Virus record (IMG/VR): IMGVR_UViG_3300029983_000007
Location: 124,001-188,000 of that record
Reading direction: 5' to 3' (one strand)
DNA length: 64,000 bases
This document shows, in pieces, positions 1-34,571 of this stretch; within the stretch, counting starts at the first letter, position 1, and each line of letters opens with the position of its first letter. The notes beneath the pieces were generated by a model. The model was not told where the DNA came from and did not search any database. It worked only from the letters and a program-made list of their open reading frames with translations. Position numbers and translations under genes: made by a program.

Positions 1-1775
1 ATTGTCATAACTTTATACCCTTGCGTATTAAGCCAATCAACTAAAATTTGCCATCCTTTATTACTATCTTTACAAGGATAATGCCAATGTTTAGAGTTCG
101 CAGTTGAGAATTGCCCAATACAAATATATTTTTCTTTAATTGGTCTAACGCCTTCAGGAATTTCAATCTTTGGTATTATTTCTTCATATTCTAATCCAAG
201 AATATCACTTGCTGTTTTTTGTAATGGTATGGTTTTATAATCAATCGGATTTTTATTACTATCAAATGGTGAATACCATCCAATTTTATATTTAGCATAT
301 AAATTTTCTGTGTTTGCTTTTCCTGGATCAACAAATGTTATTTCTGGGTATTGTTTTATAAACCAACTATTCCAAAATGTTGAGCACTGAATATTACAAT
401 TATGTTTTTTTCTAAATTCTTCTACATATGGAAACCATGCTAATGTATCTCCAATTGATTTACTTTCTATTGTTATTAAAACATTTCTATTTGTTAAATC
501 AAAATCATGTGTAATTAATTCGTTATTATGAAATATATTAATTTTATACTCCTTATAACATTCATTATTTGTACGACACCAATTATTGTTATTTAATGTT
601 TTTTTGTATATAATTTCTTTTGTATTTTTATCTATTATTTCAACATCAAACTCAGATTTTACATCTCCAAGAATTTCTACATTTGCACCGTTAATAAAAC
701 TAATATTATAATCATATTGTGGTTCTATTAATTTTTGAATTGTTTTATTAAGATTAAGTGTGTCATTATATTCTGTTGTTAATCTTGATTCAAATGTTAC
801 ATTATTATCTATTCTTTTAATATTAAAATTATCCAAAATTCTTTTAGAATCTTTATCAACATTCATTGTTAAATATTTAATATTTTTGCATGAATCATAA
901 GTATCTAAATATGTATTAAGATTATTTAAATAAATAGGCATATTATATGATGTTGCTTCTTTAACAGCTAACGGGTTCAACTCTAATATAGAAGAATGAA
1001 TTAACAAATCAGATGCTTGGTAAAATGTATCAACGTCACTTCTTTCTCCATGTATTATACAATTAATTGGTTTATTATTTAACAAAGGTTTCCAATAATC
1101 TTCAAAATTTTCTGCTTGATTACCAACAAAGTGAAATTGTATTTTATAGTCTTTTAATTTTTCAGCTATTTCAAATACATATCCTTGATTTTTTCCTTTT
1201 GTGAATAACCCAACATTTAAAACATGAAAATACTCAGAATCAAATTTTAATTCGTCAATAGCTAATCCTTTATTTGCTATTAATTTTTCAGATGGATATT
1301 CAATAATAGAAGATGGAATATTGAATTTGTTATATTGTAGTTGTGAATATTTTGATACAAATAAAAATTTATCTGGGAAATATTTTTTTTTGCTAATATC
1401 AAAAGTTGAAGTATGAGTAGTTTCTATTATTTTATATGGTCTGTCATTTCTATATAACCAATTTATATGCTCATTTCTCATTCCAAAAATAAATATTTCT
1501 GGTATTTCTTCCATATGAATAATATCAGGATTGATATTATTAATTATATCTTCAAACAAATCACGCTTTGTTTCATTTTCATTATCTCCAAGCGAAATGA
1601 ATTTATCTCCTAATAACTCAATAAGTCTATTCCTCTGCACAACAAAACTCCAAGAAATTTGTCTATATTCAATAAGATATACATCATTTGTTTTTATTAA
1701 ATATTCTACTCTTTTAAGAGCTACCATCGGAAGTCCTCCTGTAGATCCGTGAGGAATTATTATAAGTATTTTCAT
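1..1775 (-). CDS. GT4 glycosyltransferase fused to an autotransporter strand-loop-strand O-heptosyltransferase (TibC/Aah-like) domain; runs off the window
   Basis: Not in the ORF track; translated by hand from ATG 1775. MKILIIIPHGSTGGLP...HVLNVGLFTKGKNQ...FYQASDLLIHSSILELNPLAVKEA is GT4-like. It is followed by VLITIESKSIGDTLAWFPYVEEFRKKHNC, which resembles the TibC/Aah LGDxxxWFPYxExF motif. The frame is open to base 1. Confidence 0.8.
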   Translation of the reverse strand, partial: MKILIIIPHGSTGGLPMVALKRVEYLIKTNDVYLIEYRQISWSFVVQRNRLIELLGDKFISLGDNENETKRDLFEDIINNINPDIIHMEEIPEIFIFGMRNEHINWLYRNDRPYKIIETTHTSTFDISKKKYFPDKFLFVSKYSQLQYNKFNIPSSIIEYPSEKLIANKGLAIDELKFDSEYFHVLNVGLFTKGKNQGYVFEIAEKLKDYKIQFHFVGNQAENFEDYWKPLLNNKPINCIIHGERSDVDTFYQASDLLIHSSILELNPLAVKEATSYNMPIYLNNLNTYLDTYDSCKNIKYLTMNVDKDSKRILDNFNIKRIDNNVTFESRLTTEYNDTLNLNKTIQKLIEPQYDYNISFINGANVEILGDVKSEFDVEIIDKNTKEIIYKKTLNNNNWCRTNNECYKEYKINIFHNNELITHDFDLTNRNVLITIESKSIGDTLAWFPYVEEFRKKHNCNIQCSTFWNSWFIKQYPEITFVDPGKANTENLYAKYKIGWYSPFDSNKNPIDYKTIPLQKTASDILGLEYEEIIPKIEIPEGVRPIKEKYICIGQFSTANSKHWHYPCKDSNKGWQILVDWLNTQGYKVMT

Positions 1776-1834
1776 TGTACATTATTTATTTTTAATTTTT
1801 ATTCTAACTTTTATGATAAGTTTATAATTTTAAT

Positions 1835-6431: not shown

Positions 6432-9400
6432 TTACATCCCCCACCATAAATAAATTTGTCCTGCACTACGTATCTCACATTGTAAATAATTAGTACTTAG
6501 TGGTACGTAGTCACTTTGTAATGCTCCATAAATCCAATTACTTGTATACCCACTAAATATAGAAGTTGCTAATGTTCCCCCTGTCATAATAACCTTAAAG
6601 GGTTTTTTGATAATTGGATTCATTATAGTAAGAGCTTGATTAGTTCCCATAGTAACAGAGAACTCCTCTCCTGTAGTCATATCTATATTGAATCCTGGTA
6701 GAGCTACTGTTGTTATCGGCTGATTATATAATCCAACTATATTTCCATTGGCATCTACTTTAAACAAAGTTACCCATGTACCACTTCCTTTGGTGGCATT
6801 AGCTACAGTACACTTTTCAAACAATACAGTACTCATTTGATTAGAGTGTCGTATGTCACCTATTGCATCACCTACAGCTGTAGTTATTGATTGGTATACA
6901 TAACGGAGAGCTAAGTCGCGATAATTTCCTAATGTATTATTATTTATCTCTATAATCCCAGTTGTATTTTTTTGAAATGACTGAGTAGAATCGGTCATAG
7001 ACAACTTCGAATATATAATAACATTACTAGAAGTATTTATATAAAAGGAGTTAATACCCGATGTAGGAGAAAAAAACATAGCGTTACCAGAACCATCAAA
7101 TGAAAACCACTTATTATATACACCAAACCCAAATCCATTGTAATTAATACTAAAAGGACTACCAACAGTGATTGAAGTTGCACTAATATAAGTAGCAATA
7201 ATACGCTCCTCTGAATTGATTATAATTTTTGCACCAATCATTGCAGCACTAAATGCCGTACCGACACCAGTAATATTTACCCCACTTGTTGAAACAGTTC
7301 CAGTATTAATCCAAGGTGTAGTATGATAAATTATACCACCATTTTGAGAGACATAAGGAGTTATATCTGAACTACCATCAGCTTTTAAAAATTGATTTGA
7401 TGTGCCTCCAGATTTTATAAATGAATTAGAAATTGTATTTCCACTGGCGTCCACCTTAAACAAGTTTACCCATGTACCATTACCTTTCTCCACATTAGCA
7501 ACAGTACACTTTTCAAACAATATAGTACTTGCTTGATTAGACTGTCGTATATCACCGATTGAATCACCTGTTGATGTGCCTATTGATTGATAGACATAAC
7601 GAAGAGCCAAGTCACGATAATTTCCAGAGGTTCCATTATCAATAGATAATACACCAGCCAACGACCTAGAAAAAGAAGTATCTAATTGATACCCATAAAA
7701 CAATCTACCCGTTGATATATAAGCCACTGAGTTACTAGTTATACTAAAACTATTTCCGTTATTATAGCTACTAATAGTAAAAGATCCATCAGCACTTAAC
7801 TTCAATATTCGATTGTACACCGAGAACATAATACCATTATAATTAACGCTAAAAGCTAAATTAACAGTAATAGAAGTTGCACTAACATAGTTTACAATAA
7901 TACGTTCCTCTGAATTAATTATAATTTTTGCTCCAACCATTCCAGAAGTAAAGGCTGTACCTACACCAGTAATATTTACCCCACTTGTTGAAACTGTTCC
8001 TATGTTAATCCAAGGAGTAGTGTGATAAATCACACCACCATTTTGAGAGACATAAGGAGTTATATCTGAACTACCATCAGCTTTTAAAAATTGATTTGAT
8101 GTGCCTCCAGTTTTTATAAATGAGCCAGAAGTTAAGTTATTATTTCCTAAATTTACATTAGATGTTGCTCCTGTATATGTAACATAATTATTTGTAATAT
8201 TTTGAGTTAATATAGTAATTAAATTATTTAAAAAAGTGTCTCCTGATATTCTATCAAATGTTTCTCCTGTTAATAAGTTATAATTTTGTGTCGAAACAGG
8301 CAAATCAATTGGATCAACAGTTTCAAATCTTGTTGTACCAGAATTCCAATATGCCAAATAATTATTTATAGGATTTTCTTCTCTAGTAGAAAGTGGTTGT
8401 TCAAATCCAACATCTCCAACTCTAGCAACTCCAAATTTATCAAAAACTAATCTTCCATTATTTACACCATCGTAATTAATTGCTTCAATTCCAGTATATT
8501 CATTATTAGACAATCCAACTGTAGCCCCACTTCTTAGAAGAATATAATCTTTTGTTGTATATATTTGTTCTGAGTGTGTTTCATATGTTGAGCCAGATTG
8601 GGTAATATTACCATCAATATGTAATGTTCCACCGTTATCAGTATACACAAAAGGATTTGAACCATTTGGTTGATATAGTTGATAGTGAGTATGTCCAGTA
8701 TTAGACTTAGAATTTAATTGAATTTGAACATTAAATGTTATACCTGTTAAATAACCAATATTTACTTTTTCTATATCAGTTACATATTTTTTATTTTCAG
8801 AATCATTTATATCAGCAGTAGTAGCATCTTCTCCATTGATTATTAATCCTTTATAATCATATGTTATTTTAGTCCTAGTTGAACCAGTTATTGAATTGTT
8901 TGATGATAAAAATCCAACATGTCCTGAATTATCATAATCTAAATTACTTAATGATGAGTGATTTGTTACTGGAGTAGATACGAATACAGACGAAAATGCA
9001 GATTCAATACTAGTAGATGCTGATGCATTTTTTTGTACTATGATTTTACCAATTAAAAAACAAATTGTACTAATAAAAATAGGAACGGTTGGAGGTTGAG
9101 ATGATTTTGCTTCAGATTCAGTAACACAATCAGATGAATTTAATAATATAATTATTTCATTGTCAACTGATGATAATTGTCTATACACCCAATTAACAAC
9201 ATAATGTGTATCAGCAACTTCATTTAAATTCGCTCCATTATCATAATATAAATTATTATATTGAGTCACTCCCGTAGTTGTCCAAGTACCACCTGAATGA
9301 TACCATAATGTACAATTATTTATTGAAGATGAAGAAAATGACAGTGAAGTTCTAACTACACCGTTCCATGCTTTACCACTATCAATATTTATAATTCTTT

Positions 9401-10928
9401 CATTTGATTCACTAATAGACAATCCTGATTCCCAAGCAAAACGCTGAGTTTTTAAAAATCTAAGGTGAGTTTTATCAGGTAATCCATTACCTAAACTATT
9501 CCAATCTAAAAAACTTAAAATATTATTATCTCTATATATTGTTGAGATTGCAGTTGTATTAGACCAATTTACAGTACCTTGGTTTTCAATCGTATATATA
9601 GGTAATCCATTATTATAATTTACGCATAATGTACTAGAAACTTGATTTGTAGGAGTTAATGTTGATCCTGATATTGTATAATTATTTATATTTCCTGTAA
9701 AATCAATCGTTGAATATAGCATACAAACACAACTTCCAACTGTTATTGTTCCGTTGTAGTTATCTGTTATTATTGGATGTGTTATTAATCCAGAATAAGG
9801 ATGAGATGGAACTATCCAATCTCCATCTCCATTGAAATAATTATAATTATCACCTGACAATTTAGGTACAAATCCATGTTTACTTGTAGATACGTTATTT
9901 ATAATATTATCAGATATTACAATATTAGTATCTGTGTCACCAGCAATTCTATTTATAGTTTCGCCAGATATTAAATTATTTAAAAAGGTGTCTCCTGATA
10001 TTCTATTATAAGTTTCTCCGCTGATAGATAAGTTTGTTTGGTATGATATTGGTAAATCAATTGGATTAATAGTTTCAAATCTTGTTGTACCAGAATTCCA
10101 AATTGATAAATATTTATCTGTAGGAGTTTCTTCTCTGGTTGATAATGGTTGCTCGTAGCCAACATCACCAACCCTAGCAACTCCAAATTTATCGAAAGCT
10201 AATCTACCGTTATTTAATCCATCATATCTAATAACTTCTAAACCAGCGTATTCAGAATTAGATAATCCAGATGTGGATTCACTTCTTAATAATATGTAGT
10301 CATTATTTGTATATATTTGTCCAAAATGTGCGTCATTAGTTATTCCAGATTGAATAATATTTCCATCAATATGAAATGTTCCTGTATTATCAGTATATAC
10401 GAATGGATTTGTATTGTTTGGCTGATATAATTTATTATGATTGTGTCCACTATTTGAATAAATAGTAGAATCTAGTGAGCCATCGGCCTTTAAAAATTGT
10501 GTTTCTGTTCCTCCAATTATTGATATATCTCCAGATAGATTAATATTTCCTTTCACATCTAATGTTAATCCGTCAAATGTTAATCCGCTATTAGCATATG
10601 CTCCATTTGTAGTGCCATCAGATTTTAATATTCTATTATTACTATAATTTGTTACTGTATTAAATCCTGTTCCTGAACTTCCTGATGTACCATCTATTCC
10701 TGATGTTCCTGACGATCCTGACGATCCTGATGTTCCTGATGTTCCTGACGATCCTGATGTTCCTGATGTACCATCTATTCCTGATGTACCATCTATTCCT
10801 GATGTACCATCTGTACCTGATGTTGATGTCTTGCCAGATTCTACAATAGAATCCACTGTATATTTTAATTCATTTAATTTTCTTCTTACGTTTCCGCCTT
10901 CTTCATAATCTAATATCCATTCGGTCAT
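6432..10928 (-). CDS. Long tail-fibre-like virion protein with G-S-T triplet repeat and two internal duplications
   Basis: SGT/SGS/DGT triplets; QFLKADGS three times; LYQPN..NPFVYTDN...PIDLP twice; TPYVSQNGG...GNYRDLALRYVYQS twice. Confidence 0.7.
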   Translation of the reverse strand: MTEWILDYEEGGNVRRKLNELKYTVDSIVESGKTSTSGTDGTSGIDGTSGIDGTSGTSGSSGTSGTSGSSGSSGTSGIDGTSGSSGTGFNTVTNYSNNRILKSDGTTNGAYANSGLTFDGLTLDVKGNINLSGDISIIGGTETQFLKADGSLDSTIYSNSGHNHNKLYQPNNTNPFVYTDNTGTFHIDGNIIQSGITNDAHFGQIYTNNDYILLRSESTSGLSNSEYAGLEVIRYDGLNNGRLAFDKFGVARVGDVGYEQPLSTREETPTDKYLSIWNSGTTRFETINPIDLPISYQTNLSISGETYNRISGDTFLNNLISGETINRIAGDTDTNIVISDNIINNVSTSKHGFVPKLSGDNYNYFNGDGDWIVPSHPYSGLITHPIITDNYNGTITVGSCVCMLYSTIDFTGNINNYTISGSTLTPTNQVSSTLCVNYNNGLPIYTIENQGTVNWSNTTAISTIYRDNNILSFLDWNSLGNGLPDKTHLRFLKTQRFAWESGLSISESNERIINIDSGKAWNGVVRTSLSFSSSSINNCTLWYHSGGTWTTTGVTQYNNLYYDNGANLNEVADTHYVVNWVYRQLSSVDNEIIILLNSSDCVTESEAKSSQPPTVPIFISTICFLIGKIIVQKNASASTSIESAFSSVFVSTPVTNHSSLSNLDYDNSGHVGFLSSNNSITGSTRTKITYDYKGLIINGEDATTADINDSENKKYVTDIEKVNIGYLTGITFNVQIQLNSKSNTGHTHYQLYQPNGSNPFVYTDNGGTLHIDGNITQSGSTYETHSEQIYTTKDYILLRSGATVGLSNNEYTGIEAINYDGVNNGRLVFDKFGVARVGDVGFEQPLSTREENPINNYLAYWNSGTTRFETVDPIDLPVSTQNYNLLTGETFDRISGDTFLNNLITILTQNITNNYVTYTGATSNVNLGNNNLTSGSFIKTGGTSNQFLKADGSSDITPYVSQNGGVIYHTTPWINIGTVSTSGVNITGVGTAFTSGMVGAKIIINSEERIIVNYVSATSITVNLAFSVNYNGIMFSVYNRILKLSADGSFTISSYNNGNSFSITSNSVAYISTGRLFYGYQLDTSFSRSLAGVLSIDNGTSGNYRDLALRYVYQSIGTSTGDSIGDIRQSNQASTILFEKCTVANVEKGNGTWVNLFKVDASGNTISNSFIKSGGTSNQFLKADGSSDITPYVSQNGGIIYHTTPWINTGTVSTSGVNITGVGTAFSAAMIGAKIIINSEERIIATYISATSITVGSPFSINYNGFGFGVYNKWFSFDGSGNAMFFSPTSGINSFYINTSSNVIIYSKLSMTDSTQSFQKNTTGIIEINNNTLGNYRDLALRYVYQSITTAVGDAIGDIRHSNQMSTVLFEKCTVANATKGSGTWVTLFKVDANGNIVGLYNQPITTVALPGFNIDMTTGEEFSVTMGTNQALTIMNPIIKKPFKVIMTGGTLATSIFSGYTSNWIYGALQSDYVPLSTNYLQCEIRSAGQIYLWWGM
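10665..10823 (-). repeat. 9-nt-period coding repeat (collagen-like Gly-X-Y with Ser/Thr)
   Basis: tcctgatgt / tcctgacga / accatctat units encoding GTSGTDGTSGIDGTSGSSG... Confidence 0.9.
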
Positions 10929-10984: not shown

Positions 10985-12211
10985 TTAATTTTTATGTATA
11001 ATAGGATGGTCTAGCCATTTAGTTGAATCTATCCATACTTTATTATCTTGCCAATATCCTTCTGAATAAATACTAATATCATAAATAATAAACAGCATAA
11101 CATAATAAACTATTTCATTTCCTATGCTATTTTTTAACGATATTTTTATACAATAATATCCAGGATAAATAATTTCTGGATATACAATATTATTATAATC
11201 TATAAATTTAGATCCTACTATTAAAATATTTGACTTATATTTATTAATTTCCTTATCAGTGTAATCTATTACATAATCTATTAAAATATTTATAATATCT
11301 AAATTAGTTATAATGTTTTTATCAAAATCATTAAGATTTAGTGTGAATCCACTACCGATATAAATTCCATCTGTTATTCCAGTCGCTATAGAAAAATCCA
11401 TAGTATTTCCTGTTAAACTTGATGTTAATATGTTAGTATCGAATATAATATTAGGAGGAGAATCATTAACTATAATATTATAAATATAACTTGATTTAGT
11501 AATGCCTACTGATCCAGAAACTAAAATGTGAATATAATAAACTCCGTATTTATTTATGCCATTAATTTTTTTAGCAGAACCTTCTTCATATAAATTGAAT
11601 ATTATATTATCTAATGATATTTTTTCACCAAAGCATTCAGTTATTCCACTAATAAACAAATATTTTAAACTATCTAATGTCCATCCAGATATTCCATTGT
11701 GATATAAATGTAAATATGCATCGTGTGGTTCATTATTACCTCCTCCAATCCAAGTTGTGCCACTTATAGGATAATTATAATATATAATAGGAGATATTAC
11801 ATTTGATTTTGTTTTTGTTGTTGTTGTTGTAGTTATATTTTTTATTGTTGTAGTTGTAGTTGTAGTTGTCTCTAAACTTTTAACTATATTCATAATAATA
11901 TATTGTTCAATATCAGTATTATATGAAAATTTAACACAATAATATCCTATTTTAGTAATATTATCAAATATTTGTTCATCATTAACGATTAATGTAGTTA
12001 ATTGATATTTATTTATATCTCCATCTATATAATCTATTAAATTATTTATAATATCAACTCTATTGATCGTGTTATTATCAAAATTACCAATAATCAATGT
12101 AAATCCACTATTTATATCAATATTTGATACAATATCTGAGCTTGAACCAGAAAAATAATTAGTGTTACCAGTTAAGCTATATAATATATATGGATTGTAA
12201 ATAATATTCAT
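10985..12211 (-). CDS. Putative virion structural protein with poly-Thr linker and internal duplication
   Basis: SGFTL...FD.N.I...DIIN.LIDY...GYYC.K occurs twice; TTTTTTT tracts; lies in the structural operon. Confidence 0.55.
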   Translation of the reverse strand: MNIIYNPYILYSLTGNTNYFSGSSSDIVSNIDINSGFTLIIGNFDNNTINRVDIINNLIDYIDGDINKYQLTTLIVNDEQIFDNITKIGYYCVKFSYNTDIEQYIIMNIVKSLETTTTTTTTIKNITTTTTTKTKSNVISPIIYYNYPISGTTWIGGGNNEPHDAYLHLYHNGISGWTLDSLKYLFISGITECFGEKISLDNIIFNLYEEGSAKKINGINKYGVYYIHILVSGSVGITKSSYIYNIIVNDSPPNIIFDTNILTSSLTGNTMDFSIATGITDGIYIGSGFTLNLNDFDKNIITNLDIINILIDYVIDYTDKEINKYKSNILIVGSKFIDYNNIVYPEIIYPGYYCIKISLKNSIGNEIVYYVMLFIIYDISIYSEGYWQDNKVWIDSTKWLDHPIIHKN

Positions 12212-12228: not shown

Positions 12229-13098
12229 TTAGCAATCCATAACAACTCCATTTTTATACGTACAATCAGAAGTCAAATATATGCAAAAATTATTCTTATA
12301 TGAATTATATGCAAAAATCATTCTACAATATGCTTGTTCGTAATCATATTTGGTTAAAAACTTAATAGTGTAGTAAGTTGTTAAAGTACCTAAATATATA
12401 TAATATTTTGAAGTATCTGAACTTAATGATATAATAGTAGTATATGGTATGTGATATTTCAAATTCGTATATCCAGTACCAATTGACGAAACTACCCCGC
12501 TAATGATAAATTCCGTTGAGCCTGTTTGTCCAGTAGAATAATAGCAATCTACTTGATTAGTTATAATATCATTATAATATAAATTTGATATAGTTACAGC
12601 ACTACTTGGCTGAGGAGTAGGTGGCAAATTAATATTTGCTTGTAGAACATCTATTGCAACATCATAATCTGATGGATTATTCAAATAAATTTTTCCTATT
12701 TTATTTAGAATAGAACCATTTAAGAGTAGTAATCTACCAATTGGATATGTTGTTCCTGAATCAGAATCATAATAATAATTTATATTATATGTGTTTTGTT
12801 CATAGTAATAATAAGGATCATATGAACTTTCATTCACATTACTATAATTACCATTATATATAACTTTTATTAATAAAAATGTAGATTCTTCGATATCACC
12901 ATAATTTAATAAAAAATCTTCAGTGTATGCAGGTAGTATCAATCTTGCATTATAACATGATTCATAAAAAATTTCAATATCACTAAGACTTAAAACAGAA
13001 GATGTTTGAGGTCCGTCTGATGTTCTAAAATCTCTATTACAATTTTTTATTTCTCTTTTTGTTTGAGTACTAAGTATATTTGTTGTTATTTTAGCCAC
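12229..13098 (-). CDS. Putative structural protein, paralog of 13109-13882
   Basis: Start reassigned to GTG 13098 (MAKITT..., compare MAIITP...). Shares TFL.IKV.Y, DPYY.YE..YNINY and NP.DYDV..DVL.A with its neighbour. Confidence 0.6.
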   Translation of the reverse strand: MAKITTNILSTQTKREIKNCNRDFRTSDGPQTSSVLSLSDIEIFYESCYNARLILPAYTEDFLLNYGDIEESTFLLIKVIYNGNYSNVNESSYDPYYYYEQNTYNINYYYDSDSGTTYPIGRLLLLNGSILNKIGKIYLNNPSDYDVAIDVLQANINLPPTPQPSSAVTISNLYYNDIITNQVDCYYSTGQTGSTEFIISGVVSSIGTGYTNLKYHIPYTTIISLSSDTSKYYIYLGTLTTYYTIKFLTKYDYEQAYCRMIFAYNSYKNNFCIYLTSDCTYKNGVVMDC

Positions 13099-13108
13099 TA
13101 TATTTATA

Positions 13109-13882
13109 TTATATTTTATCCCAGTTACCAGCACTGGCATCAATTAATCTTAAAACATCAAATTGATTAAGAAATTGATATGAACTTGAATAATCTATTG
13201 TTTGAGTACTTTCAGGTATAATAGTTATAACTCCATTTAATATATTTTTTATAGTTAATATATTACCAGTTCCTGTAGATGATGGTAAATATAATGAATA
13301 TGTAGAGCCAGAATCTGTTGTTCCTGAACATCTTATATATTCATCTGATGTTGTTCCAGTATAAGTACTTGATATATCTTTTATATCATAATGTATTTGA
13401 TAATCAGGTGATATATTTGTTTCATCATCAAATTCAGAATCTACTGTCGCATGTAATACATCCAATACCACATCATAATCCAGTGGATTTGTTACATATA
13501 TTTGTGGTATTCTTTCTTCTGATGAGCCTGTCATTATTAATAATCTATTTAATGGTCTTAAAATTGGATCATTTTCAAAGTGATAATTTATATTATATTT
13601 TATTTCCTCATATTTATAATATGGATCAGTCAAACTATCATAAGTTACTTTTATCATTAAAAAAGTAACAGCTTTACCAATAAATCCATATAGTAATTTA
13701 TTAGATTCTCCTGCTTTTAAAACTATTCTTGATCTGTATTGTGATTCATATGGAATAGCTAAATCTTCTAAACTTAATTTGCTAATGATGTTCGGACCTT
13801 CAACCGCAATAAATGAGCAATTCCAATTTTTTATTGTTTTCTCTGTTGTGTTAATAAGAGAATTAGGTGTTATTATGGCCAT
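13109..13882 (-). CDS. Putative structural protein
   Basis: First gene after the late-type promoter at 13898-13908; paralog of the downstream gene; fibre-like C-terminus (YSLYLPSSTGTGNILTIKN). Confidence 0.6.
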   Translation of the reverse strand: MAIITPNSLINTTEKTIKNWNCSFIAVEGPNIISKLSLEDLAIPYESQYRSRIVLKAGESNKLLYGFIGKAVTFLMIKVTYDSLTDPYYKYEEIKYNINYHFENDPILRPLNRLLIMTGSSEERIPQIYVTNPLDYDVVLDVLHATVDSEFDDETNISPDYQIHYDIKDISSTYTGTTSDEYIRCSGTTDSGSTYSLYLPSSTGTGNILTIKNILNGVITIIPESTQTIDYSSSYQFLNQFDVLRLIDASAGNWDKI

Positions 13883-26231: not shown

Positions 26232-27868
26232 ATTTTAAATTTTAGGTTACCAGAGTCGTATATTCTGTATATTTTTCTATCAATCATAATTTGATGTTCA
26301 GTTTTATTTTTATCAAAACCTTGCTTGACTAATAAATCTTTTCTGAAGTTAAATCTATGATGTCTGATTCCGTCAATTATATAGTAATAATTTGGTTGTG
26401 TTTTTCCGTCATATTTAAATCCAAGAGTTTCATATAATTTACCTTGACTAAAACTTCTATCAGCGTATGTGGATATTTCATTTGGTTTATAATTTTTCAT
26501 GAAATATTTAAATAATCTTGATGCACCGCCAACAACGTTAGTATTTAATTTATTACAGAAACGTAATAGTTCATATTCACCTTTATTTGTTGATTTTTTA
26601 CCCATTGCTATACGTCTATTACCGAAAGTCATCAGACTAACTAATTCATCATTATAAAATAATCCAATTTTAACTTTTGATCCGACAAATCCTTGAATGT
26701 GATTGGTATCAAGAAATTCTCTAACCAACTTATTGTCAATTATTTCTTTAATTTCGCATTTTCTCGCATATAATTTAATAGTATTTTTACCTAATTTATT
26801 TAATATTATTGATTTAACGATTTCTTGTTTATATAACCAATCATCTTCCCATATATGAATTAATTGTATTCCTTGTTTTTCACACAACTCAGTTTTATTT
26901 AAATGATAATTATTTTCTTTGTGCAATTCATTATGCCAATATACTCCATTGAATTCAAACGCTATTTTTAAATCTGGTATATAAATATCTAATTCATATG
27001 GATTTAAAATAGTTCTATCATTGTATATTATATTAATCTTACAATTGTTTTTTATAAAAATGTGTAATTGAGTTTCATATCCACTATTTGAAAATGATCC
27101 AATTGGATTACATACAGTACAAATAACAGTCTTAGAAATTTTCCTATTATATAAAATATTAGCTACAATATTAAAATTGTGATTTTTTTTACAATCACAT
27201 TTAAATGTATAAATATTATCAATCAATGATATAATATTATTATTTTCATATAATTTTAATATTTTTTTAGTCCTATTTTTTTTTATTTTATCTTTTATTT
27301 CTAAAAATGAAAATGGATTATCAAACCCATGATTTTTTAAATTTGTTTCTTTTATTTTTTCTTTTATTTTTTCTGACTGCATTAGAATACCATTAAATCT
27401 GTCATTCATTGTGTTTTTGAATTTTAATTTAATTTCATTTGATTGCATAGGATTTAATACCTTATAATTATTGAAAGTGGTTTTTTCTTTTTTTAATTTA
27501 ATATCATTTAATTTAGAAACGTTATCAACTCCATATTTTTCTAAACAAGTTCTTTTTGATTTTACTGAATTATTATAATTTTCAACTCCATATTTTTCTA
27601 AGTTGGTTTTTTTAGATTTAAAATTGAAGCATTTTTTACAAGTGTAAATATCATATTTTGATATATTTTTATTATATTTTTGATAAGTTATGATTTTTTC
27701 ATTGTCACAAATGTCACATTTTACCAACAATTTAACCGCACTATTGATTGGTAATTGTGATATCAGTATTTCAATATTATCTCCACTTGATATGTTATTA
27801 TACCATTTTTTATAGTGAGATATTGTTTTATTACTAACTTTTATGTTTATTGTATTTTCTACTATCAT
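26228..27868 (-). CDS. Free-standing homing-endonuclease-like protein (KYGV repeats, PD-(D/E)xK core, Hef-like C-terminus)
   Basis: VKCDIC, LEKYGVEN repeats, ELDIYIPDLKIAFEFNGVYWH, LIHIWEDDW, YELLRFC, YADRS; paralog of 45687-47573. Confidence 0.75.
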   Translation of the reverse strand: MIVENTINIKVSNKTISHYKKWYNNISSGDNIEILISQLPINSAVKLLVKCDICDNEKIITYQKYNKNISKYDIYTCKKCFNFKSKKTNLEKYGVENYNNSVKSKRTCLEKYGVDNVSKLNDIKLKKEKTTFNNYKVLNPMQSNEIKLKFKNTMNDRFNGILMQSEKIKEKIKETNLKNHGFDNPFSFLEIKDKIKKNRTKKILKLYENNNIISLIDNIYTFKCDCKKNHNFNIVANILYNRKISKTVICTVCNPIGSFSNSGYETQLHIFIKNNCKINIIYNDRTILNPYELDIYIPDLKIAFEFNGVYWHNELHKENNYHLNKTELCEKQGIQLIHIWEDDWLYKQEIVKSIILNKLGKNTIKLYARKCEIKEIIDNKLVREFLDTNHIQGFVGSKVKIGLFYNDELVSLMTFGNRRIAMGKKSTNKGEYELLRFCNKLNTNVVGGASRLFKYFMKNYKPNEISTYADRSFSQGKLYETLGFKYDGKTQPNYYYIIDGIRHHRFNFRKDLLVKQGFDKNKTEHQIMIDRKIYRIYDSGNLKFKI

Positions 27869-27926: not shown

Positions 27927-30900
27927 TTATTCATATTTTGTTTTTATAGGATCTATTATATATTCAACATGAGAATAATTAGAAAATACATTATTATTCA
28001 TGTTTTGGTCAATATTAGTTATAACATAAAAATCTTTATCCCATGATGAATTGAATATAAATCTTGAACTAAATTCATATCCATATTCATCTACCATTGG
28101 ATAAATTGATAAATCTGTATCAATATTTTTTAATTTTAATGGAGAAGATATTGGATTAACTTTTGAATATATTAATTCTTCTATTCTTCCAAAGTTTTCG
28201 TATGTAGTATCAAATTTATAATTCGAATTCCATGATTTTATTGTATCACCAGATAAATAAAGAGATACATTATTAAAAATTGATATATTATTAAATATTG
28301 GTTCATATGAGCCGTTGTATCTATAAATTGAATTTGTTGATGATACACCATTTGATGTGTTCATTATAGTTTCATTATTATTCAAATACATAGTTCTTGC
28401 TAAAGGATCAGTTACATTATATTTTTGTTTTTTATTATTGTCATAATAAATTTGATATTTATCATAAATGTTTGCTGATGGTCCTTTTATTGCGTTTTTA
28501 ATATATGAATTTTTACTAGTTTCTAATAATTTAGGATCATTCAAAGTGAAAATAAAAGGTGGATAATTATGAATCCAATCTGATACATTTTTCATTGTAC
28601 CTCCGGTTATATTCATAGGAAAAGTATATCCAGATTGTCCATGTGAATTTACGTAATAATATGTTATACCAGAATCAAATTCTGATAGAGTATTCATATC
28701 ATCAAATGCATCAAATATATTTGATGCTACAATTAAAGATGGATCAAAATCAGTAACATTTGCAGGATAAGATAAACTATGTCCTTCCAATGTTTTAGAA
28801 TTATACAATCCAAATTTTTCTCCAAAAACAGCAACATTGTTTATATTTATGTACTCTTGTTGAATTGGAATTTTAACATTAATTATAATTAAAAAATTCT
28901 TAAATTTTTCATTTAAAATTACATGAATTGAATTTGATGAAATATCTATTACGTTATTATTAGATAATCCGTTTTCATATGTTGAATTATATACACCATC
29001 AGTATAATATTCATATACATCATTAAGAATTATTGAAAATTTATAATTATTGAAATTTTTACTATTATCTGCTACAATATTTGTTATTTTTCCATTAATA
29101 TCTCTTGATATATTTGATACATTTAATGCATTTATATTTAATCCTTTAAATAAGGTATTGGATGCACTATAATTATCACCTGATTGTAATGTTGAGTATT
29201 TTAATGTTTGCTTAACGTAATCTATATCATCAATAGTAAAATTTGATTTGTTTTTGAAAAAATAATCAAAATAATCAAAGTCAGAATTTAAATATAAATC
29301 TAAGTTGAATTTTTTACTAAAGCTTTCCATAAAATCAACTTCAATATTAGTAGTTTGATTTAGATATTTAACTGTATTGCCTGTATTACCTGAGAAAAAA
29401 TTACCTATTCTATAAAAATAATCTAAGTTCTTTTCAACTTCATTTGGCTTTAAACTAAATACATTGCAAGTAGAATTGAATGTATCACCAATATTAAATG
29501 AATTATTTAGTTTATAAGGATAATCACAATTAGAATTTGAGCCAGCAAATCCCCATTTTACTACTGATGGATTTTTTCTCCATATTTTAGTTAAATTATT
29601 AAATGATATTTCATAGAGTTCATCATCTGAAACATATTCAGATGAAACATTCATTACTTGATATTGTCCATCTTCTCCTCTTGGATGTGTCATATATGAT
29701 TTAGTTAATGAAGACGTATCAGTATAATCCACAGCATATAGTTTTTGTTCATCTGTTGAAGTATATGTATCTTTTTCATAATCGAAATCTGCAAAATGCG
29801 TATTGACTCTATTAAAATCAAAATCTTTAATATCACTAAATTTTACTCTATAAACAGGATAAACTATTGGTTTATTTCCATATGTATATATTTCCTTTTT
29901 TATATAATATGTACTATCTTTTCCGCCTTTCCAATATTCCAATCCTGTTGAATATGAATTTATCGCATAATCACTTTGTATAAAATAATTACCGTTTTTA
30001 TTTTTTAAAACATGATATATTCCATCTATTTGAATTAAGTATAAATCTGCATACATTGATTCTATAGAATTTCCTGAATAATATGGATCTATGTTGAAGT
30101 TTGATGTATAACCAGATATATGATTAGTCACACCAGAAGGATTATTAATAACATTACATTTATAATTATAACCATTTGTATAATTAATATTACAAGTTCT
30201 ATCATTAGAAACATTGAAAGTATAACCACTCATATCAATATTACTAACTATTCTATATGTATTAACACCTTTGTTATTTACTCTTATAACGTTATAAAAT
30301 TCATTATCATAATCAGAACCAGTAAGTTGAACCCAATATTTCTTATCTAAAAAGAATCCTTCAACAAAAGGAGATTCACGACTTTCTATAAATGTGTTAC
30401 CTGACATATGTCCAAATATATTATTTTTCAAAGTGAATCCACTTTTCAATTCAGGAGTGACATATGATGTTAAATTAGTTATTAGTTCTAATTTATCAGC
30501 ATAAAAACCATAATATCTATTTATAGAATAATTATTTATATTTATAGGATTAGCAGGTACGTCATCAAATAAAAATTTCAAATTTAATATATGTGGAAAT
30601 ATTAAATTATTATTTTCAAAAGATTTAATAATTTCATTTTCAAGTTTAAAATGTGGCTGCTCATATTTTAGTATAGATTGTAAGAAATTAGATTTATTTA
30701 CATAACTACCATTTTTATAATCAATACCATAAAATTTTGAATATTCATATTGTCTAAAATCTAAATCAAATGATCTTTCTGGAAATGATGTATTATTTTT
30801 AAAATTGTCATAAAAAAATAATCCTAAATTTGTATTATATCTCATATCTATTAAAGATACACATTTCCATTTATCTACTATTTGAGTATGAAAGTTATCT

Positions 30901-31361
30901 TTATTTAATTTACTTGCACCTAAATCATCATCTTCTGTTTCATAAGGTGCTGCGCCATCAACTCTTAATATAACAAATCCATCAGGTAAATTATCTTTTC
31001 TTATGAATAATGGAGCTAAATATTCAAAATTCTCATTATACCAATTATCTTCTACAGATTTTGCTCCACTCCAATAAATATCATCAAATTGTTTATTATA
31101 TTTATCAAATACATTAGTAACATCTGAATCATATTTTACATCAAATGCTAATTGTGATGATAAACCATCATAATAATTTACTATTTGATTTTCATATAAT
31201 TTATTTTTAGAAATAGGATAATGTTTATATTTTTGATTAGATAACTGAGTATTAGTATCAAATGACTCTAAATATAGTTTATAATCAGAACTAACAACTA
31301 ATTTTATATTAGTTGTTAGTGCTGGATTAGTTCTTAATAATTGAAAACTGTTATTTATCAT
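27927..31361 (-). CDS. Large putative virion structural protein
   Basis: 1144 aa, N/Y/F-rich, late operon, 11 [ST]GxT motifs; no family recognised. Confidence 0.6.
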   Translation of the reverse strand: MINNSFQLLRTNPALTTNIKLVVSSDYKLYLESFDTNTQLSNQKYKHYPISKNKLYENQIVNYYDGLSSQLAFDVKYDSDVTNVFDKYNKQFDDIYWSGAKSVEDNWYNENFEYLAPLFIRKDNLPDGFVILRVDGAAPYETEDDDLGASKLNKDNFHTQIVDKWKCVSLIDMRYNTNLGLFFYDNFKNNTSFPERSFDLDFRQYEYSKFYGIDYKNGSYVNKSNFLQSILKYEQPHFKLENEIIKSFENNNLIFPHILNLKFLFDDVPANPININNYSINRYYGFYADKLELITNLTSYVTPELKSGFTLKNNIFGHMSGNTFIESRESPFVEGFFLDKKYWVQLTGSDYDNEFYNVIRVNNKGVNTYRIVSNIDMSGYTFNVSNDRTCNINYTNGYNYKCNVINNPSGVTNHISGYTSNFNIDPYYSGNSIESMYADLYLIQIDGIYHVLKNKNGNYFIQSDYAINSYSTGLEYWKGGKDSTYYIKKEIYTYGNKPIVYPVYRVKFSDIKDFDFNRVNTHFADFDYEKDTYTSTDEQKLYAVDYTDTSSLTKSYMTHPRGEDGQYQVMNVSSEYVSDDELYEISFNNLTKIWRKNPSVVKWGFAGSNSNCDYPYKLNNSFNIGDTFNSTCNVFSLKPNEVEKNLDYFYRIGNFFSGNTGNTVKYLNQTTNIEVDFMESFSKKFNLDLYLNSDFDYFDYFFKNKSNFTIDDIDYVKQTLKYSTLQSGDNYSASNTLFKGLNINALNVSNISRDINGKITNIVADNSKNFNNYKFSIILNDVYEYYTDGVYNSTYENGLSNNNVIDISSNSIHVILNEKFKNFLIIINVKIPIQQEYININNVAVFGEKFGLYNSKTLEGHSLSYPANVTDFDPSLIVASNIFDAFDDMNTLSEFDSGITYYYVNSHGQSGYTFPMNITGGTMKNVSDWIHNYPPFIFTLNDPKLLETSKNSYIKNAIKGPSANIYDKYQIYYDNNKKQKYNVTDPLARTMYLNNNETIMNTSNGVSSTNSIYRYNGSYEPIFNNISIFNNVSLYLSGDTIKSWNSNYKFDTTYENFGRIEELIYSKVNPISSPLKLKNIDTDLSIYPMVDEYGYEFSSRFIFNSSWDKDFYVITNIDQNMNNNVFSNYSHVEYIIDPIKTKYE

Positions 31362-31391: not shown

Positions 31392-34300
31392 TTAATTTAC
31401 ACTACTTCTTAATGACGAAGTTTTGTTTCTAAATACGTTAAATATAATTTCAAATTCAAATGGTCTGCTTAAACTTTCAGATTCAACAAATATTCTTAAT
31501 TTTCTTGTAACAGATGGTGATGTAGACAAATTGGTAGGAAATGTAACTGTTTCATTTGTACCTCCTGATAATTTGAAAAATATTTTAATTGGTAATATAA
31601 ATTTGTTATTAGAATTTATTAATTTTACTCCACTATTATCTGAATAAACAAAATCTTTAATATTATCAATATATGGATGAATTGTAACAGGAAAATCTGT
31701 TTCATAATCATTATCAGATGACCAAGTAATTCCAGTCCAATTGATATCATTAAATATATTTATCGGATCAGAATATGTACCTCCTGAATTTGGAACTGTT
31801 GTACCAGTCAATCCAACATTCCAGTTTTTGGAATATAAAACTTGACCTAATCCAGTAGAATTATATGTTTTACCTGAATTGTATATAGCATTTGTTCCTG
31901 ATGTATCAGAAATCCAAACAAATTGATTATCTACTTGTGTTCTAAGAAGATCATCAGAATCAATATAAGATGCTAATGAACCATTTGAATATTGATGATT
32001 ATAGAATCTATTATCTCCAGTAATATCAGGTACATATTTTCTATATGAAAGTAATCCTAATTGAGAAGCTTTAGATATATTATCAAATTCTAAATAATAT
32101 TCACTTGTAGAATAAATATTATTATAATATGTTCTTGTATTATTAGATATCTCAGCATAATTTTCACATATAACCTTTTGAGTTACAGATGCTCCGTTTC
32201 TTATAATAATACTATTAGAATTTTGATAAAGACTAATTGAAAGTTCACCTTTAGCATTTGAAACAATTTCTTCAAGAGCAGTAATTCTATCTGTTAATAA
32301 TTTCAAATAATCATTTAACATTATAATATTACCAGAACTATCTTTAACAGATGTTCCTACATTTACATCAGTGTGAGCAACATATAAATCATTCACATAA
32401 TATGATTGTTGTAAATGTGTTGTCAATCCTTTTGAATTGAAGTCACTTTCTATTTGTGAATATATTTGTTCGTTTTGTGCTGATTGTAGAATAGTAGAAT
32501 TTTCATTACCTACCTGAGCAAGATTAGTTGGAAAATCAATTGTCATAATATCTGACCAATCAGAAACAATAAGAGAGTCTGGAAATCCAACTTCTGATAC
32601 AGATTTAATTCTAATTTCAACTGTTTCATTTGGTTGTAGTGAAATGTCTAATTGATTTACTTTTGGAGAATTTGCGTCAGATACATTTTCAACATCCCAT
32701 GTCCATGCATCTAAAGCTCTATTGTATGTTCTTTTTCTTGCCTCTGTCATATATTGATTCCAATTAGAGAAATAACCAGTTTCAGTTACATTTTGAGTTG
32801 TTACACTTGGATTAAGATATGCTTTAGTTTGATCTGTAATATCACCAGTAGATGTAGAATTTGTATATATTGTTTCCGTTATATTCAAATTGAAGCCTTC
32901 TGTTGTAGGTTCAGAACCTCCAGTAGCTTTGTATCTATATTGAACAATGAACTGAACTACTTCTTGCTTTTGTTGTTCCCCTACTGTATTTATAATTACA
33001 GGTTCAGGAACACTCCAAAAACCTCTAACTCTAAATTTTGCTGTTACGCTTGAAATAGAACCAGTGTTTTCTGCATTGATTTGACTAACAATTGATGTGT
33101 ATGATTTAGTTAGTGATGATTGTTGACTTATTAACGTGCTTAGTTTATTTTGACTTGCTTGTTTATCTGAAGTAGATTTGTATTGTTTTGTACTAAGCTC
33201 TTTATTTTGTTCAACTATAGCATCGCTTAATTGTTCTAATTGTGATTTTATAGATACCTTTTGAGTATTTAAATTTTGAATTTTTGCAGAATCTGCTGTA
33301 TCAGTTAAATGTTTATTTATTTGTATAACTTTAAAATTACTAGATACCAAATTTGGTATATTTGGAGTGACACCAAATTTACTAGGAATATTTTTAGAAA
33401 TTAAATCTTTTAATATCGAACCATAATCAAATACAGTGTCACTATAAAATTTAGTCATTGAAACTGTACTATTAGTATCTAAGACTAAATTGTTACTATA
33501 AAAAGATGTACCATAAGACCATGTTGAAGATACAACATTTGCATCAGTATTAATAGGTTTAATAAATACAACATTATATTCGTCGTATCCAATAGATATT
33601 TTTATTGTTTTAGATGGTAATACAGGACTATATATCTTCAATCCTTGTGTTAGTATTGGTACTGGTTCAAGTCCCTCCACTCTCTCTAAAATAACTCTAT
33701 AATTACTTTTAGCTGTACTAACTTCTTTAATATACCATAATGTAGATGAATCTTTTTTATTTATTATCAATTCATCTCCAACTGATAATTGTCTGGTGTT
33801 ACCAGTATAATCATAATATGTTATTGAGCCTAATACATACCACATTTTATTATTAATTGTATCATTATCAATACCTACAACATCAAATATTCCATGATAT
33901 TGAAGTTTATCATAATCTAATTCAAATATTTGTTCATCATAAGGTTGATTTTTATGAAAAACTCCAGTGTTTTTAACATTAGTGTACCATGAAGTTAAAT
34001 CATCTATAAAAACATCATTTCTGTTTAAGAAATTAGTTTCAAAATCAGATTTTGAATTTGCTCCATCAGATGTCAAATTACCATATTGATCTTTTTGAAA
34101 ATTTATAATATATCTACGTGATAATACTTTTTTAACTTTCTGATCAATTTTATCAGTTAAATCAAGTTGTATTGCAAGCATAGGATCATAAAGTGATTCA
34201 AAAAATGAATTATTTATTGATGTGAATTTTTTGATACTATCTAAACTATCAATAGGACTAGGTTCACTATTCAAATCATCTACATATATCCTTCTCATTG

Positions 34301-34571
34301 TTGTACCATCAGATACATAAGCTGTACTATCTGCTAATCCTGCTAATTTTTGAATATTTCTATTTGCAATATCTAACTCATTTTTTAATTGTCCAACTGT
34401 TGGAAATTGATATGATGATGTTGTTCCATCTGTATTCATTAAGTTAACGTTAACAACAGAATTTCTACTTGTTACAACATCAGTTAATTTTGTCATAACT
34501 TCCATAGAATTCTTATTTAATACAGCCATTTGTTCAGCTAACGATACCATGCTGTTTTGTTGATTTATCAT
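31392..34571 (-). CDS. Large putative virion structural protein with central coiled coil
   Basis: 1059 aa; late-type motif at 34594-34603; Fn3-like VEIRIKSVSEVG...SDWS. Confidence 0.6.
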   Translation of the reverse strand: MINQQNSMVSLAEQMAVLNKNSMEVMTKLTDVVTSRNSVVNVNLMNTDGTTSSYQFPTVGQLKNELDIANRNIQKLAGLADSTAYVSDGTTMRRIYVDDLNSEPSPIDSLDSIKKFTSINNSFFESLYDPMLAIQLDLTDKIDQKVKKVLSRRYIINFQKDQYGNLTSDGANSKSDFETNFLNRNDVFIDDLTSWYTNVKNTGVFHKNQPYDEQIFELDYDKLQYHGIFDVVGIDNDTINNKMWYVLGSITYYDYTGNTRQLSVGDELIINKKDSSTLWYIKEVSTAKSNYRVILERVEGLEPVPILTQGLKIYSPVLPSKTIKISIGYDEYNVVFIKPINTDANVVSSTWSYGTSFYSNNLVLDTNSTVSMTKFYSDTVFDYGSILKDLISKNIPSKFGVTPNIPNLVSSNFKVIQINKHLTDTADSAKIQNLNTQKVSIKSQLEQLSDAIVEQNKELSTKQYKSTSDKQASQNKLSTLISQQSSLTKSYTSIVSQINAENTGSISSVTAKFRVRGFWSVPEPVIINTVGEQQKQEVVQFIVQYRYKATGGSEPTTEGFNLNITETIYTNSTSTGDITDQTKAYLNPSVTTQNVTETGYFSNWNQYMTEARKRTYNRALDAWTWDVENVSDANSPKVNQLDISLQPNETVEIRIKSVSEVGFPDSLIVSDWSDIMTIDFPTNLAQVGNENSTILQSAQNEQIYSQIESDFNSKGLTTHLQQSYYVNDLYVAHTDVNVGTSVKDSSGNIIMLNDYLKLLTDRITALEEIVSNAKGELSISLYQNSNSIIIRNGASVTQKVICENYAEISNNTRTYYNNIYSTSEYYLEFDNISKASQLGLLSYRKYVPDITGDNRFYNHQYSNGSLASYIDSDDLLRTQVDNQFVWISDTSGTNAIYNSGKTYNSTGLGQVLYSKNWNVGLTGTTVPNSGGTYSDPINIFNDINWTGITWSSDNDYETDFPVTIHPYIDNIKDFVYSDNSGVKLINSNNKFILPIKIFFKLSGGTNETVTFPTNLSTSPSVTRKLRIFVESESLSRPFEFEIIFNVFRNKTSSLRSSVN

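Follow-up and report, generated by a model that had tools for sequence, protein, structure and literature searches.

An uncultured jumbo phage encodes a BAHT-family glycosyltransferase and carries a candidate acceptor sequon in fibre-like proteins

Bacterial autotransporter heptosyltransferases (BAHT), such as TibC of ETEC and Aah of DAEC, are cytoplasmic enzymes that place heptose on adhesins, and they are known only as partners of autotransporter adhesins in Gram-negative bacteria. Their substrate is a single beta-helix with 19-aa repeats, which is modified at many sites in strand-loop-strand positions. In the literature consulted, no linear consensus is reported for the E. coli enzymes, only a strand-loop-strand structural motif or weak Asn preferences (PMC3835316, PMC5000012). 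Glycosylation of a phage's own particle is documented mainly for mycobacteriophages (Freeman et al. 2023, PMC10527164, as cited in PMC12619734). In those Actinobacteria phages, phage-encoded glycosyltransferases of other families modify the C-termini of capsid and tail-tube subunits; no BAHT or dispersed short tag appears in the sentence of PMC12619734 that cites this work. HMW1C-type cytoplasmic N-glycosyltransferases also place many single sugars on large secreted or exposed beta-rich adhesins (PMC4550697). They read the short linear tag N-x-S/T, but make an N-linkage on Asn, belong to family GT41, use UDP-hexose and are not homologous to BAHTs. The general O-glycosylation system of Bacteroidota uses a short motif, D-(S/T)-(A/I/L/V/M/T), across many proteins, but it is host-encoded, periplasmic and lipid-linked, whereas phage virion proteins assemble in the cytoplasm.

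We analysed a 64,000-nucleotide stretch (the window; positions 124,001 to 188,000 of IMG/VR record IMGVR_UViG_3300029983_000007) of a 330-kb phage contig. A megablast search found no near-identical known phage. An initial annotation had proposed that a TibC/Aah-like transferase encoded here O-glycosylates a [ST]-G-x-T sequon in structural proteins. The relevant features are as follows.

1..1775 (-): first 591 codons of an 820-aa GT4-BAHT bifunctional glycosyltransferase; the 3' end of the gene lies beyond window position 1
6432..10928 (-): 1498-aa collagen-repeat, tail-fibre-like protein (Pfam Collagen, PHROG tail-fibre families and phrog_34297); candidate acceptor
10985..12211 (-): 408-aa predicted chain of Ig/cadherin-like beta-sandwich domains with a poly-Thr linker; candidate acceptor
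12229..13143 (-): 304-aa protein of unknown family, with an N-terminus similar to the next protein
13109..13882 (-): 257-aa protein of unknown family
13957..16449 (+): 830-aa protein with no Pfam or PHROG family
27927..31361 (-): 1144-aa beta-rich protein, orthologue of Sphingomonas phage PAU gp265 (here famB); candidate acceptor
31392..34571 (-): 1059-aa protein, orthologue of PAU gp264 (phrog_29329; here famA); candidate acceptor
44352..45572 (-): 406-aa phage glycosyltransferase

We first assessed the family of the transferase. The full protein (L005:10001-12463, on the locus L005 that carries the complete gene) has a GT4/GT1 domain at about aa 1-340 (Pfam Glycos_transf_1 at aa 175-285, E 1e-11), a BAHT domain at aa 359-710 and a 105-aa C-terminal extension. 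It scored 308 bits against the TIGR04414 equivalog model (cutoff 200), covering positions 15-371 of 374, while the window fragment alone scored 175 bits because the gene is cut. A peptide that the initial annotation had singled out in this product was present and lies in the TibC/Aah-type domain. In phmmer alignments to the TibC structures 4RB4 and 4RAP (E 3e-60), the catalytic base Asp110 and the sugar-nucleotide-binding residues Thr226, Lys230, Arg286 and Trp305 (TibC numbering, PMC4358343) were all identical. The four iron-finger cysteines (339, 342, 358 and 370) were also conserved, and are invariant in ten phage BAHT domains.

The phage enzyme differs from TibC in several respects. The beta-hairpin thumb that builds the TibC dodecamer is 9 residues shorter here (relative to TibC residues of about 267-275), so the mode of substrate handling may differ. 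TibC Pro300, the D,D-heptose selectivity residue, is Gly, so the donor is uncertain. Pfam scans of 28 window ORFs showed no ADP-heptose synthesis gene; relatives suggest a Bacteroidota host, and a supply of ADP-heptose from such a host would be an assumption. There is no autotransporter partner. The next gene, just outside the window, instead encodes a 676-aa TIG-domain protein (L005:12499-14529), a difference of context rather than of enzyme family. The candidate acceptors are at least seven unrelated phage proteins rather than one beta-helix, and they carry a strict linear tag, whereas no consensus is known for Aah or TibC. The 406-aa glycosyltransferase matched phage glycosyltransferase family phrog_7162 (E 5e-44), with a Pfam Glyco_trans_1_4 match below threshold (22 bits, cutoff 27) and no PDB sequence match. 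It might extend the glycan, or might serve something else, such as DNA or the host surface.

To determine whether the motif was enriched beyond composition, we counted [ST]GxT per protein. We observed 24, 8, 4, 3, 6, 11 and 6 motifs in the seven proteins from 6432-10928 to 31392-34571, in the order listed, against 4.1, 0.45, 0.28, 0.22, 0.50, 0.47 and 0.90 expected (each p<=0.003, 1000 residue shuffles). The observation in the initial annotation is therefore confirmed, with every hand count exact. Pooled, the seven proteins hold 62 motifs against 6.9 expected (Poisson p 4e-37), whereas the other 55 ORFs of at least 100 aa hold 2 against 4.7. NadE, UvsW and both topoisomerase halves hold 0, as had been stated. 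Of all [ST]G dipeptides, 62 of 130 are followed by xT in the seven proteins and 2 of 74 elsewhere. By eye, about five of the 24 sites in the 1498-aa protein are internal duplicates, leaving roughly 19 independent sites there. Enrichment did not extend to every neighbour: the 877-aa Gly/Ser/Thr-rich protein at 3795-6428 has only 1 against 1.7, while the 676-aa TIG-domain protein has 11 against 1.7.

We next scanned all 8000 a-b-x-c patterns without prior choice. SGxT (39 against 3.6, p 9e-27) and TGxT (23 against 3.3, p 1e-12) ranked first and second; the next pattern had p about 1e-4. Position 1 is S (10.8x) or T (7x) only, position 2 is G only (9x), and position 4 is T (9x), with S at 2.2x. 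The usual turn formers N-G and D-G were not enriched (0.6x and 2.1x). Serine codons TCT, TCA and AGT at the motif were mixed as in the background. Together with the residue shuffles and per-protein expectations, this rules out a DNA-level or compositional artefact and places the signal at the protein level. All-against-all BLAST of the seven proteins found similarity only between the 257-aa and 304-aa proteins (44% identity over about 150 aa). A single repeated domain is therefore rejected as the source of the counts, although internal duplication accounts for the duplicates in the 1498-aa protein and for the two-module layout of the 408-aa protein.

To assess whether the motif tracks the enzyme across related phages, as the initial annotation had suggested should be examined, we compared famA and famB orthologues chosen only by orthology. 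In LR756501, which has a GT4 gene and a GT4-BAHT gene, SGxT and TGxT were again the top two patterns (16 against 2.0). LR745206, LR756502, LR756500, PAU and pT24 showed no enrichment (1-5 against 1-2.4), and none of them had a BAHT hit at E<=0.01 in a search of 50,697 phage records. LR756504, which has a stand-alone 389-aa BAHT, had 0 against 1.7. Among complete genomes of the clade, enrichment was thus present in 2 of 2 with GT4-BAHT, 0 of 5 without BAHT and 0 of 1 with a stand-alone BAHT, but in the famB tree the enriched sequences form essentially one clade with LR756504 as sister, so enzyme and motif may have arisen together once, and this represents about one independent event, possibly plus one loss. 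A de-enriched subclade lies inside the enriched clade (contigs behind loci L140, L141 and L143). All transferase-centred loci of this clade have motif-rich neighbours, and all 36 homologues of the 408-aa protein are enriched (4-20 against 0.2-1.2).

BAHT alone is not sufficient for enrichment. Microcystis phage Mel-JY01 encodes a 1226-aa protein with a GT1-family domain fused to BAHT, but its genome shows 38 motifs against 27.8 expected; the genes next to this BAHT gave no Pfam hit, and so no ADP-heptose pathway gene. About 70 marine-type BAHT contigs showed no enrichment within 10 kb either side, and the protein after BAHT in marine contigs has no homology to the TIG-domain protein. The absence of enrichment in the whole Mel-JY01 genome and in the large structural proteins of PAU, pT24 and four megaphages also rules out a general property of phage fibres.

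We then compared site positions between the two enriched lineages. Only 2 of the 11 (this phage) and 12 (LR756501) famB sites, and 0 of the 6 and 4 famA sites, share alignment columns. Across 47 famB homologues, 66 different columns are used, and density stays about 10-20 times chance across 40-78% identity. Motif density is thus being maintained rather than inherited.

Structure prediction was performed with AlphaFold2 for the 408-aa protein (mean pLDDT 79.5) and the 1144-aa protein (pLDDT 72.8, pTM 0.77). Foldseek against the PDB matched the 408-aa model to sidekick and cadherin Ig strings. The 1144-aa model had no PDB match, and only uncharacterised PAU-gp265-like viral models were found in BFVD (best match Gp265-like, TM 0.69). 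By DSSP on these models, which assigns secondary structure rather than solvent exposure, 17 of 19 sites lie in coil or straddle a strand edge, including two-residue hairpins at S320-G-N-T323 and S1037-G-D-T1040, and two lie inside strands.

We propose that the BAHT domain of a cytoplasmic two-domain enzyme O-glycosylates the Ser/Thr at position 1 of [ST]GxT tags, most likely with a heptose from ADP-heptose. In this view, the tags sit at loop/strand junctions and tight beta-hairpins of many unrelated fibre-like, Ig-like and baseplate-like proteins. The fused GT4 domain, and perhaps a nearby GT6 and the 406-aa glycosyltransferase, would then add further sugar, before or during virion assembly. 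We consider this account somewhat more likely than not. What our analysis establishes is the family of the enzyme and its intact catalytic residues, the strong, position-specific, protein-level enrichment in a defined protein set, its restriction in orthologues to the clade where the enzyme is found, the continuing gain and loss of sites at high density, and their location in coil or at strand edges in models. That the motif is the acceptor of this enzyme, which residue is modified, that any residue carries a glycan at all, the sugar and its transfer from ADP-heptose, the presence of the proteins in the virion and the purpose of the coat are inferences.

The interpretation in the initial annotation is thus only partly supported. 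Its assignment of the transferase to the TibC/Aah family, fused to a GT4 domain, holds, as do the reality of the motif and its confinement to mutually unrelated large beta-rich proteins in the clade where the enzyme occurs. In the models the motif sits in coil or at strand edges, as BAHT acceptors do. Its claim that the coat covers much of the virion is not supported: capsid, sheath and tube lie outside the window, virion membership of five of the seven proteins is inferred only, and a search for a major capsid protein via the PAU annotation found none in the stretch examined. The proposed roles in shielding, stability or receptor mimicry are likewise not supported by our data. Its statement that TibC/Aah act on Ser-Gly loops is looser than the literature, which reports a structural motif only (PMC3835316).

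Two alternative explanations, both unlikely to a similar degree, remain. The motif could be a purely structural device, a favoured beta-hairpin or strand-start cap that spread in the fibre and baseplate proteins of one jumbo-phage clade, with the transferase inherited alongside and acting on something else. The mapping of enrichment to one clade, the position of sites at hairpins and strand starts, the conservation of several sites within a repeated roughly 100-aa module of the 408-aa family, and the absence of the motif from phages with other BAHTs are consistent with this. However, orthologues with the same folds in BAHT-less phages carry unrelated residues at those columns, sites turn over while density stays high, the motif occurs in at least seven unrelated protein families, and a hydroxyl residue is required at position 1 while the classic turn formers are not enriched.

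Alternatively, the tag could be read by a different partner: the GT4 domain as priming enzyme, the GT6 or the 406-aa glycosyltransferase, a kinase or other modifier, or an assembly chaperone encoded elsewhere in the 330-kb genome, most of which lay outside our analysis. GT4 and BAHT are always linked in the enriched clade, so genomics cannot separate them, the stand-alone BAHT of LR756504 goes with no motif, and a GT6 gene and a second glycosyltransferase lie nearby. Against this, BAHT is the only domain here whose family is known to glycosylate protein serines at strand-loop-strand sites (PMC4358343, PMC3835316). GT4 enzymes usually extend glycans, and the Mel-JY01 fusion without the motif indicates that a GT4-type domain is not sufficient either.

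Least likely is that the transferase modifies host envelope proteins or polysaccharide during infection, for example for superinfection exclusion, as proposed for glycosyltransferase clusters of jumbo cyanophages, which Iyer et al. read as cell-surface modification systems (PMC7824862); although BAHT homologues are very common in marine viral contigs without the motif signal, this leaves the motif, its clade-restricted enrichment and its turnover unexplained, and the transferase gene sits among the motif-rich fibre genes in every locus of the clade.

If the proposed reading is wrong, there is still an unexplained, strongly selected four-residue motif in one phage clade. A broader reading, which we regard as about as likely as not, is that a clade of uncultured jumbo phages, with relatives that infect mainly Bacteroidota, carries the first linear sequon for the BAHT family. 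The tag set would evolve quickly, much as N-glycan sites do on animal-virus glycoproteins. Because thousands of GT4-BAHT fusions exist in viral metagenomes, protein O-glycosylation of virions could be widespread in environmental phages, with other tags still to be read. If our reading is right, BAHTs become a major, unstudied class of phage enzymes, with matches in at least 592 stretches in IMG/VR and 1923 GT4-BAHT-like proteins in metagenomes. The family would also gain a four-residue acceptor tag that can be tested directly with peptides and would be useful for glyco-engineering in E. coli, which already makes ADP-heptose. Virion proteins of uncultured phages could then be predicted to be glycosylated from sequence alone, which bears on receptor binding, particle stability and recognition by hosts or grazers.

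The window (positions 124001-188000) lies on a 330,208-bp IMG/VR contig, IMGVR_UViG_3300029983_000007, with the offset taken from the locus ranges. Its GC content is 21-32%, and a search of 50,697 phage records returned no near-identical DNA match. The conserved large proteins of the window tie it to the 460-735-kb "uncultured phage" genomes LR745206 and LR756500-LR756504, to the Lak phages of Prevotella, to Tenacibaculum, Flavobacterium and Chryseobacterium jumbo phages, and to Sphingomonas phage PAU. These data suggest that a Bacteroidota host is likely, although it is inferred from the relatives alone. In addition to the genes described below, the window encodes NadE, UvsW, ThyA, a DNA methyltransferase, an OmpA-domain protein, several homing endonucleases and a split topoisomerase II. 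The topoisomerase II is divided into two genes with a homing-endonuclease-like ORF between them (53290-55194 (-), 55573-56430 (+) and 56462-58264 (-)), and large HNH or homing-endonuclease ORFs also lie at 26228-27868, 43465-44394 and 45687-47573. A 408-aa phage protein at 48450-49676 (+) carries a C-terminal OmpA-family peptidoglycan-binding domain.

To determine whether the [ST]GxT motif is over-represented, we counted it in each ORF and compared the counts with expectations from composition. Every hand count in the initial annotation was exact, and the observation on which it rested therefore holds.

[ST]GxT motifs in the seven motif-rich proteins of the window (observed; expected)
6432-10928 (-), 1498-aa protein with collagen repeats: 24; 4.1
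10985-12211 (-), 408-aa protein predicted to be Ig/cadherin-like: 8; 0.45
12229-13143 (-), protein of no known family: 4; 0.28
13109-13882 (-), protein of no known family: 3; 0.22
13957-16449 (+), protein of no known family: 6; 0.50
27927-31361 (-), 1144-aa protein, orthologue of PAU gp265: 11; 0.47
31392-34571 (-), 1059-aa protein, orthologue of PAU gp264: 6; 0.90

Each protein was enriched upon residue shuffling (P <= 0.003). Pooled, the seven proteins hold 62 motifs against 6.9 expected (P = 4e-37), while the other 55 ORFs hold 2 against 4.7. Nearly half of all [ST]G dipeptides in the seven proteins are followed by xT (62 of 130), compared to 2 of 74 elsewhere. In a scan of all 8000 a-b-x-c patterns without any prior, SGxT (P = 9e-27) and TGxT (P = 1e-12) were the two most over-represented patterns, with the next best at about P = 1e-4. 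By eye, about five sites in the 1498-aa protein are internal duplicates.

We observed that each fixed position of the motif is selective. Position 1 accepts S (10.8-fold) or T (7-fold), with no other residue above 2.1-fold; N and D, which make the commonest Gly turns, are not favoured. Position 2 is G only (9-fold), and position 4 is T (9-fold), with S weak at 2.2-fold. Position x is free, and the flanks lean to I/L/N/Q before the motif and to F/Y/W/L and then N/D after it. Serine at position 1 uses the codons TCT, TCA and AGT in background proportions. The signal is therefore selected at the protein level and is not a DNA motif.

We next assessed the transferase encoded at 1-1775 (-), whose product is cut by the window edge. 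On the parent contig, the full 820-aa protein has a GT4/GT1 domain (Pfam), a BAHT domain and a 105-aa tail. The BAHT domain passes the NCBIfam equivalog model for "autotransporter strand-loop-strand O-heptosyltransferase" (308 bits against a cutoff of 200). Alignment to the TibC crystal-structure sequences (E = 3e-60) showed that the catalytic base Asp110, the ADP-heptose contacts Thr226, Lys230, Arg286 and Trp305, and all four iron-finger cysteines are kept (residue roles from PMC4358343). Asp110 corresponds to the Asp in the peptide that the initial annotation had singled out in this protein. There are two differences from TibC: the beta-hairpin "thumb" that builds the TibC dodecamer is 9 residues shorter, and Pro300, which sets heptose stereoselectivity, is Gly.

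Just beyond the window, past position 1, the transferase is followed by a 676-aa TIG-domain protein with 11 motifs against 1.7 expected, a conserved 303-aa protein (phrog_4417) and a GT6-family glycosyltransferase (12499-16344 of L005, the parent contig region around the transferase). Together these look like one glycosylation gene block. ORF 44352-45572, which encodes a 406-aa protein, is a member of a phage glycosyltransferase family, and any connection to the proposed glycosylation system would be conjectural. A second contig (L012), which encodes a 100% identical transferase, carries two different ORFs (894 and 825 aa, with few motifs) where this phage has the 1498-aa collagen-like fibre at 6432-10928. 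This looks like a fibre-cassette swap between near-identical phages.

We then asked what the motif-bearing proteins are. The 1498-aa protein has collagen repeats and tail-fibre PHROG matches. The 408-aa protein models well (pLDDT 79.5) as a string of Ig/cadherin-like sandwiches. Although a gene call on record for this ORF is 302 aa (P0121), homologues of 400-417 aa align over the full 408 aa, so the longer start looks right. A poly-threonine linker with low model confidence (residues about 113-137) runs between its Ig-like domains and recurs in homologues; such runs could be further O-glycosylation sites, independent of the tag. The 1059- and 1144-aa proteins, the orthologues of PAU gp264 and gp265, are adjacent in all relatives and beta-rich, and the pT24 orthologue of the latter is annotated "tail collar domain". 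Except for one pair, the seven proteins share no detectable similarity. Virion membership is thus likely for two proteins, and is inferred for the rest from size, beta-rich composition and neighbourhood. An 877-aa Gly/Ser/Thr-rich protein with a Fib_succ_major domain (3795-6428 (-)), located between NadE and the fibre genes, has only 1 motif against 1.7 expected and serves as an internal negative control.

To determine whether the motif co-occurs with the enzyme, we searched sequenced phages for BAHT and found it to be rare. At E <= 0.01, it is present only in LR756501 (with LR756503, a second record of the same length that gave identical hits), LR756504 and Microcystis phage Mel-JY01. We took the gp264- and gp265-like orthologues from complete genomes by orthology alone and repeated the unbiased scan. 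Prevotella phage Lak-A2 could not be used as a control, because standard-code ORF calling breaks up the region around its gp264-like match, which would fit the recoding reported for Lak phages.

[ST]GxT in the gp264- and gp265-like orthologues (genome; transferase genes; observed vs expected in the two orthologues; whether SGxT and TGxT are the top two patterns)
This phage; GT4-BAHT fusion; 17 vs 1.4; yes
LR756501; a GT4 gene next to a GT4-BAHT gene; 16 vs 2.0; yes
LR745206; none; 2 vs 1.0; no
LR756502; none; 5 vs 1.6; no
LR756500; none; 1 vs 1.6; no
PAU; none; 1 vs 1.0; no
pT24; none; 4 vs 2.4; no
LR756504; stand-alone 389-aa BAHT; 0 vs 1.7; no

Every transferase-centred locus of this clade in IMG/VR has motif-rich neighbours; these loci have enzyme identity of 64-100%, plus more distant ones at 41-49%. 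Among 120 metagenomic homologues of the 1144-aa protein, most carry 7-15 motifs against about 0.5 expected.

To assess how independent this evidence is, we examined a tree of 57 gp265-like proteins. Almost all enriched sequences fall in one well-supported clade, in which this phage and LR756501 sit in different subclades. LR756504 is the sister of this clade, and the BAHT-less megaphages lie in the other major clade. The co-occurrence is therefore roughly one evolutionary event. A second event is possible, because a subclade inside the enriched clade (L140, L141 and L143; IMG/VR contigs 3300028603_000074, 3300025121_000035 and 3300028601_000028) has gp265-like proteins with only 1-2 motifs and may have lost the enzyme. 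What makes the association more than shared history is turnover. Between this phage and LR756501, only 2 of 11 and 12 sites in gp265-like proteins, and none of 6 and 4 in gp264-like proteins, occupy the same alignment columns, and BAHT-less orthologues carry unrelated residues at those columns. Across 47 homologues the motif occupies 66 different columns, about 11 of them common and many of them singletons. A tenfold excess that persists while individual sites come and go means that the motif itself is under continuing selection in this clade.

We mapped the 19 sites of the 408- and 1144-aa proteins onto their AlphaFold2 models using DSSP, with local pLDDT mostly 75-94. Seventeen sites lie in coil or straddle a strand edge, and the common arrangement is a loop, then S/T, then G-x-T opening the next strand. 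Two sites are textbook two-residue hairpins (S320-G-N-T323 and S1037-G-D-T1040), while two others (188 and 910) lie inside strands.

BAHT homologues are very common in viral metagenomes. At least 592 stretches in IMG/VR match, and 1923 proteins in the metagenome protein set match the 820-aa enzyme at E <= 1e-20. The best 120 listed nearly all combine GT1/GT4-family and BAHT matches, some with extra methyltransferase, GT2 or GT25 domains, and JGI already labels them by the TIGR04414 name. Most of these are 40-47% identical and come from contigs of 30-37% GC; within 10 kb of them we observed no [ST]GxT excess, only collagen-like proteins. On marine-type BAHT contigs (L050, L071, L078, L083, L092-L094, L096 and L102), very long Gly-Ser/Thr collagen-like proteins with SGxS, GTxG and GSxG patterns at 5-10-fold lie next to BAHT genes, and may be the acceptors in those phages. 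Mel-JY01 has a GT1-BAHT fusion and no excess in its whole genome.

Overall, our data show a BAHT-GT4 enzyme with intact catalytic residues, and a selected, clade-restricted S/T-G-x-T tag at strand edges of many unrelated large phage proteins. From these we infer, rather than demonstrate, that the BAHT domain transfers a heptose, or a related ADP-sugar, to the position-1 hydroxyl in the cytoplasm, that GT4, and possibly GT6 or the 406-aa enzyme, extend the glycan, and that the products are exposed parts of the particle. The glycan may serve stability or folding, as for AIDA-I and TibA, or masking or adhesion. We consider this explanation somewhat more likely than not. A purely structural motif and a different reader of the tag are both unlikely alternatives, with little to choose between them. 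A transferase aimed at the host is the least likely. The proposal in the initial annotation of a phage-encoded, sequon-directed virion glycosylation system is thus supported only in part.

BAHT protein O-heptosylation and phage virion glycosylation are both already known, and the system proposed here differs in joining a phage BAHT-GT4 enzyme to a linear tag. We found no paper on phage BAHTs or on such a tag in a literature collection that lacks many subscription journals. Because Mel-JY01 in its whole genome, and the 40-47% identical metagenomic homologues within 10 kb, show no [ST]GxT excess, the tag, if it is one, belongs to one enzyme subfamily. Other phage BAHTs may read structure only, as in E. 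coli, or may read other tags.
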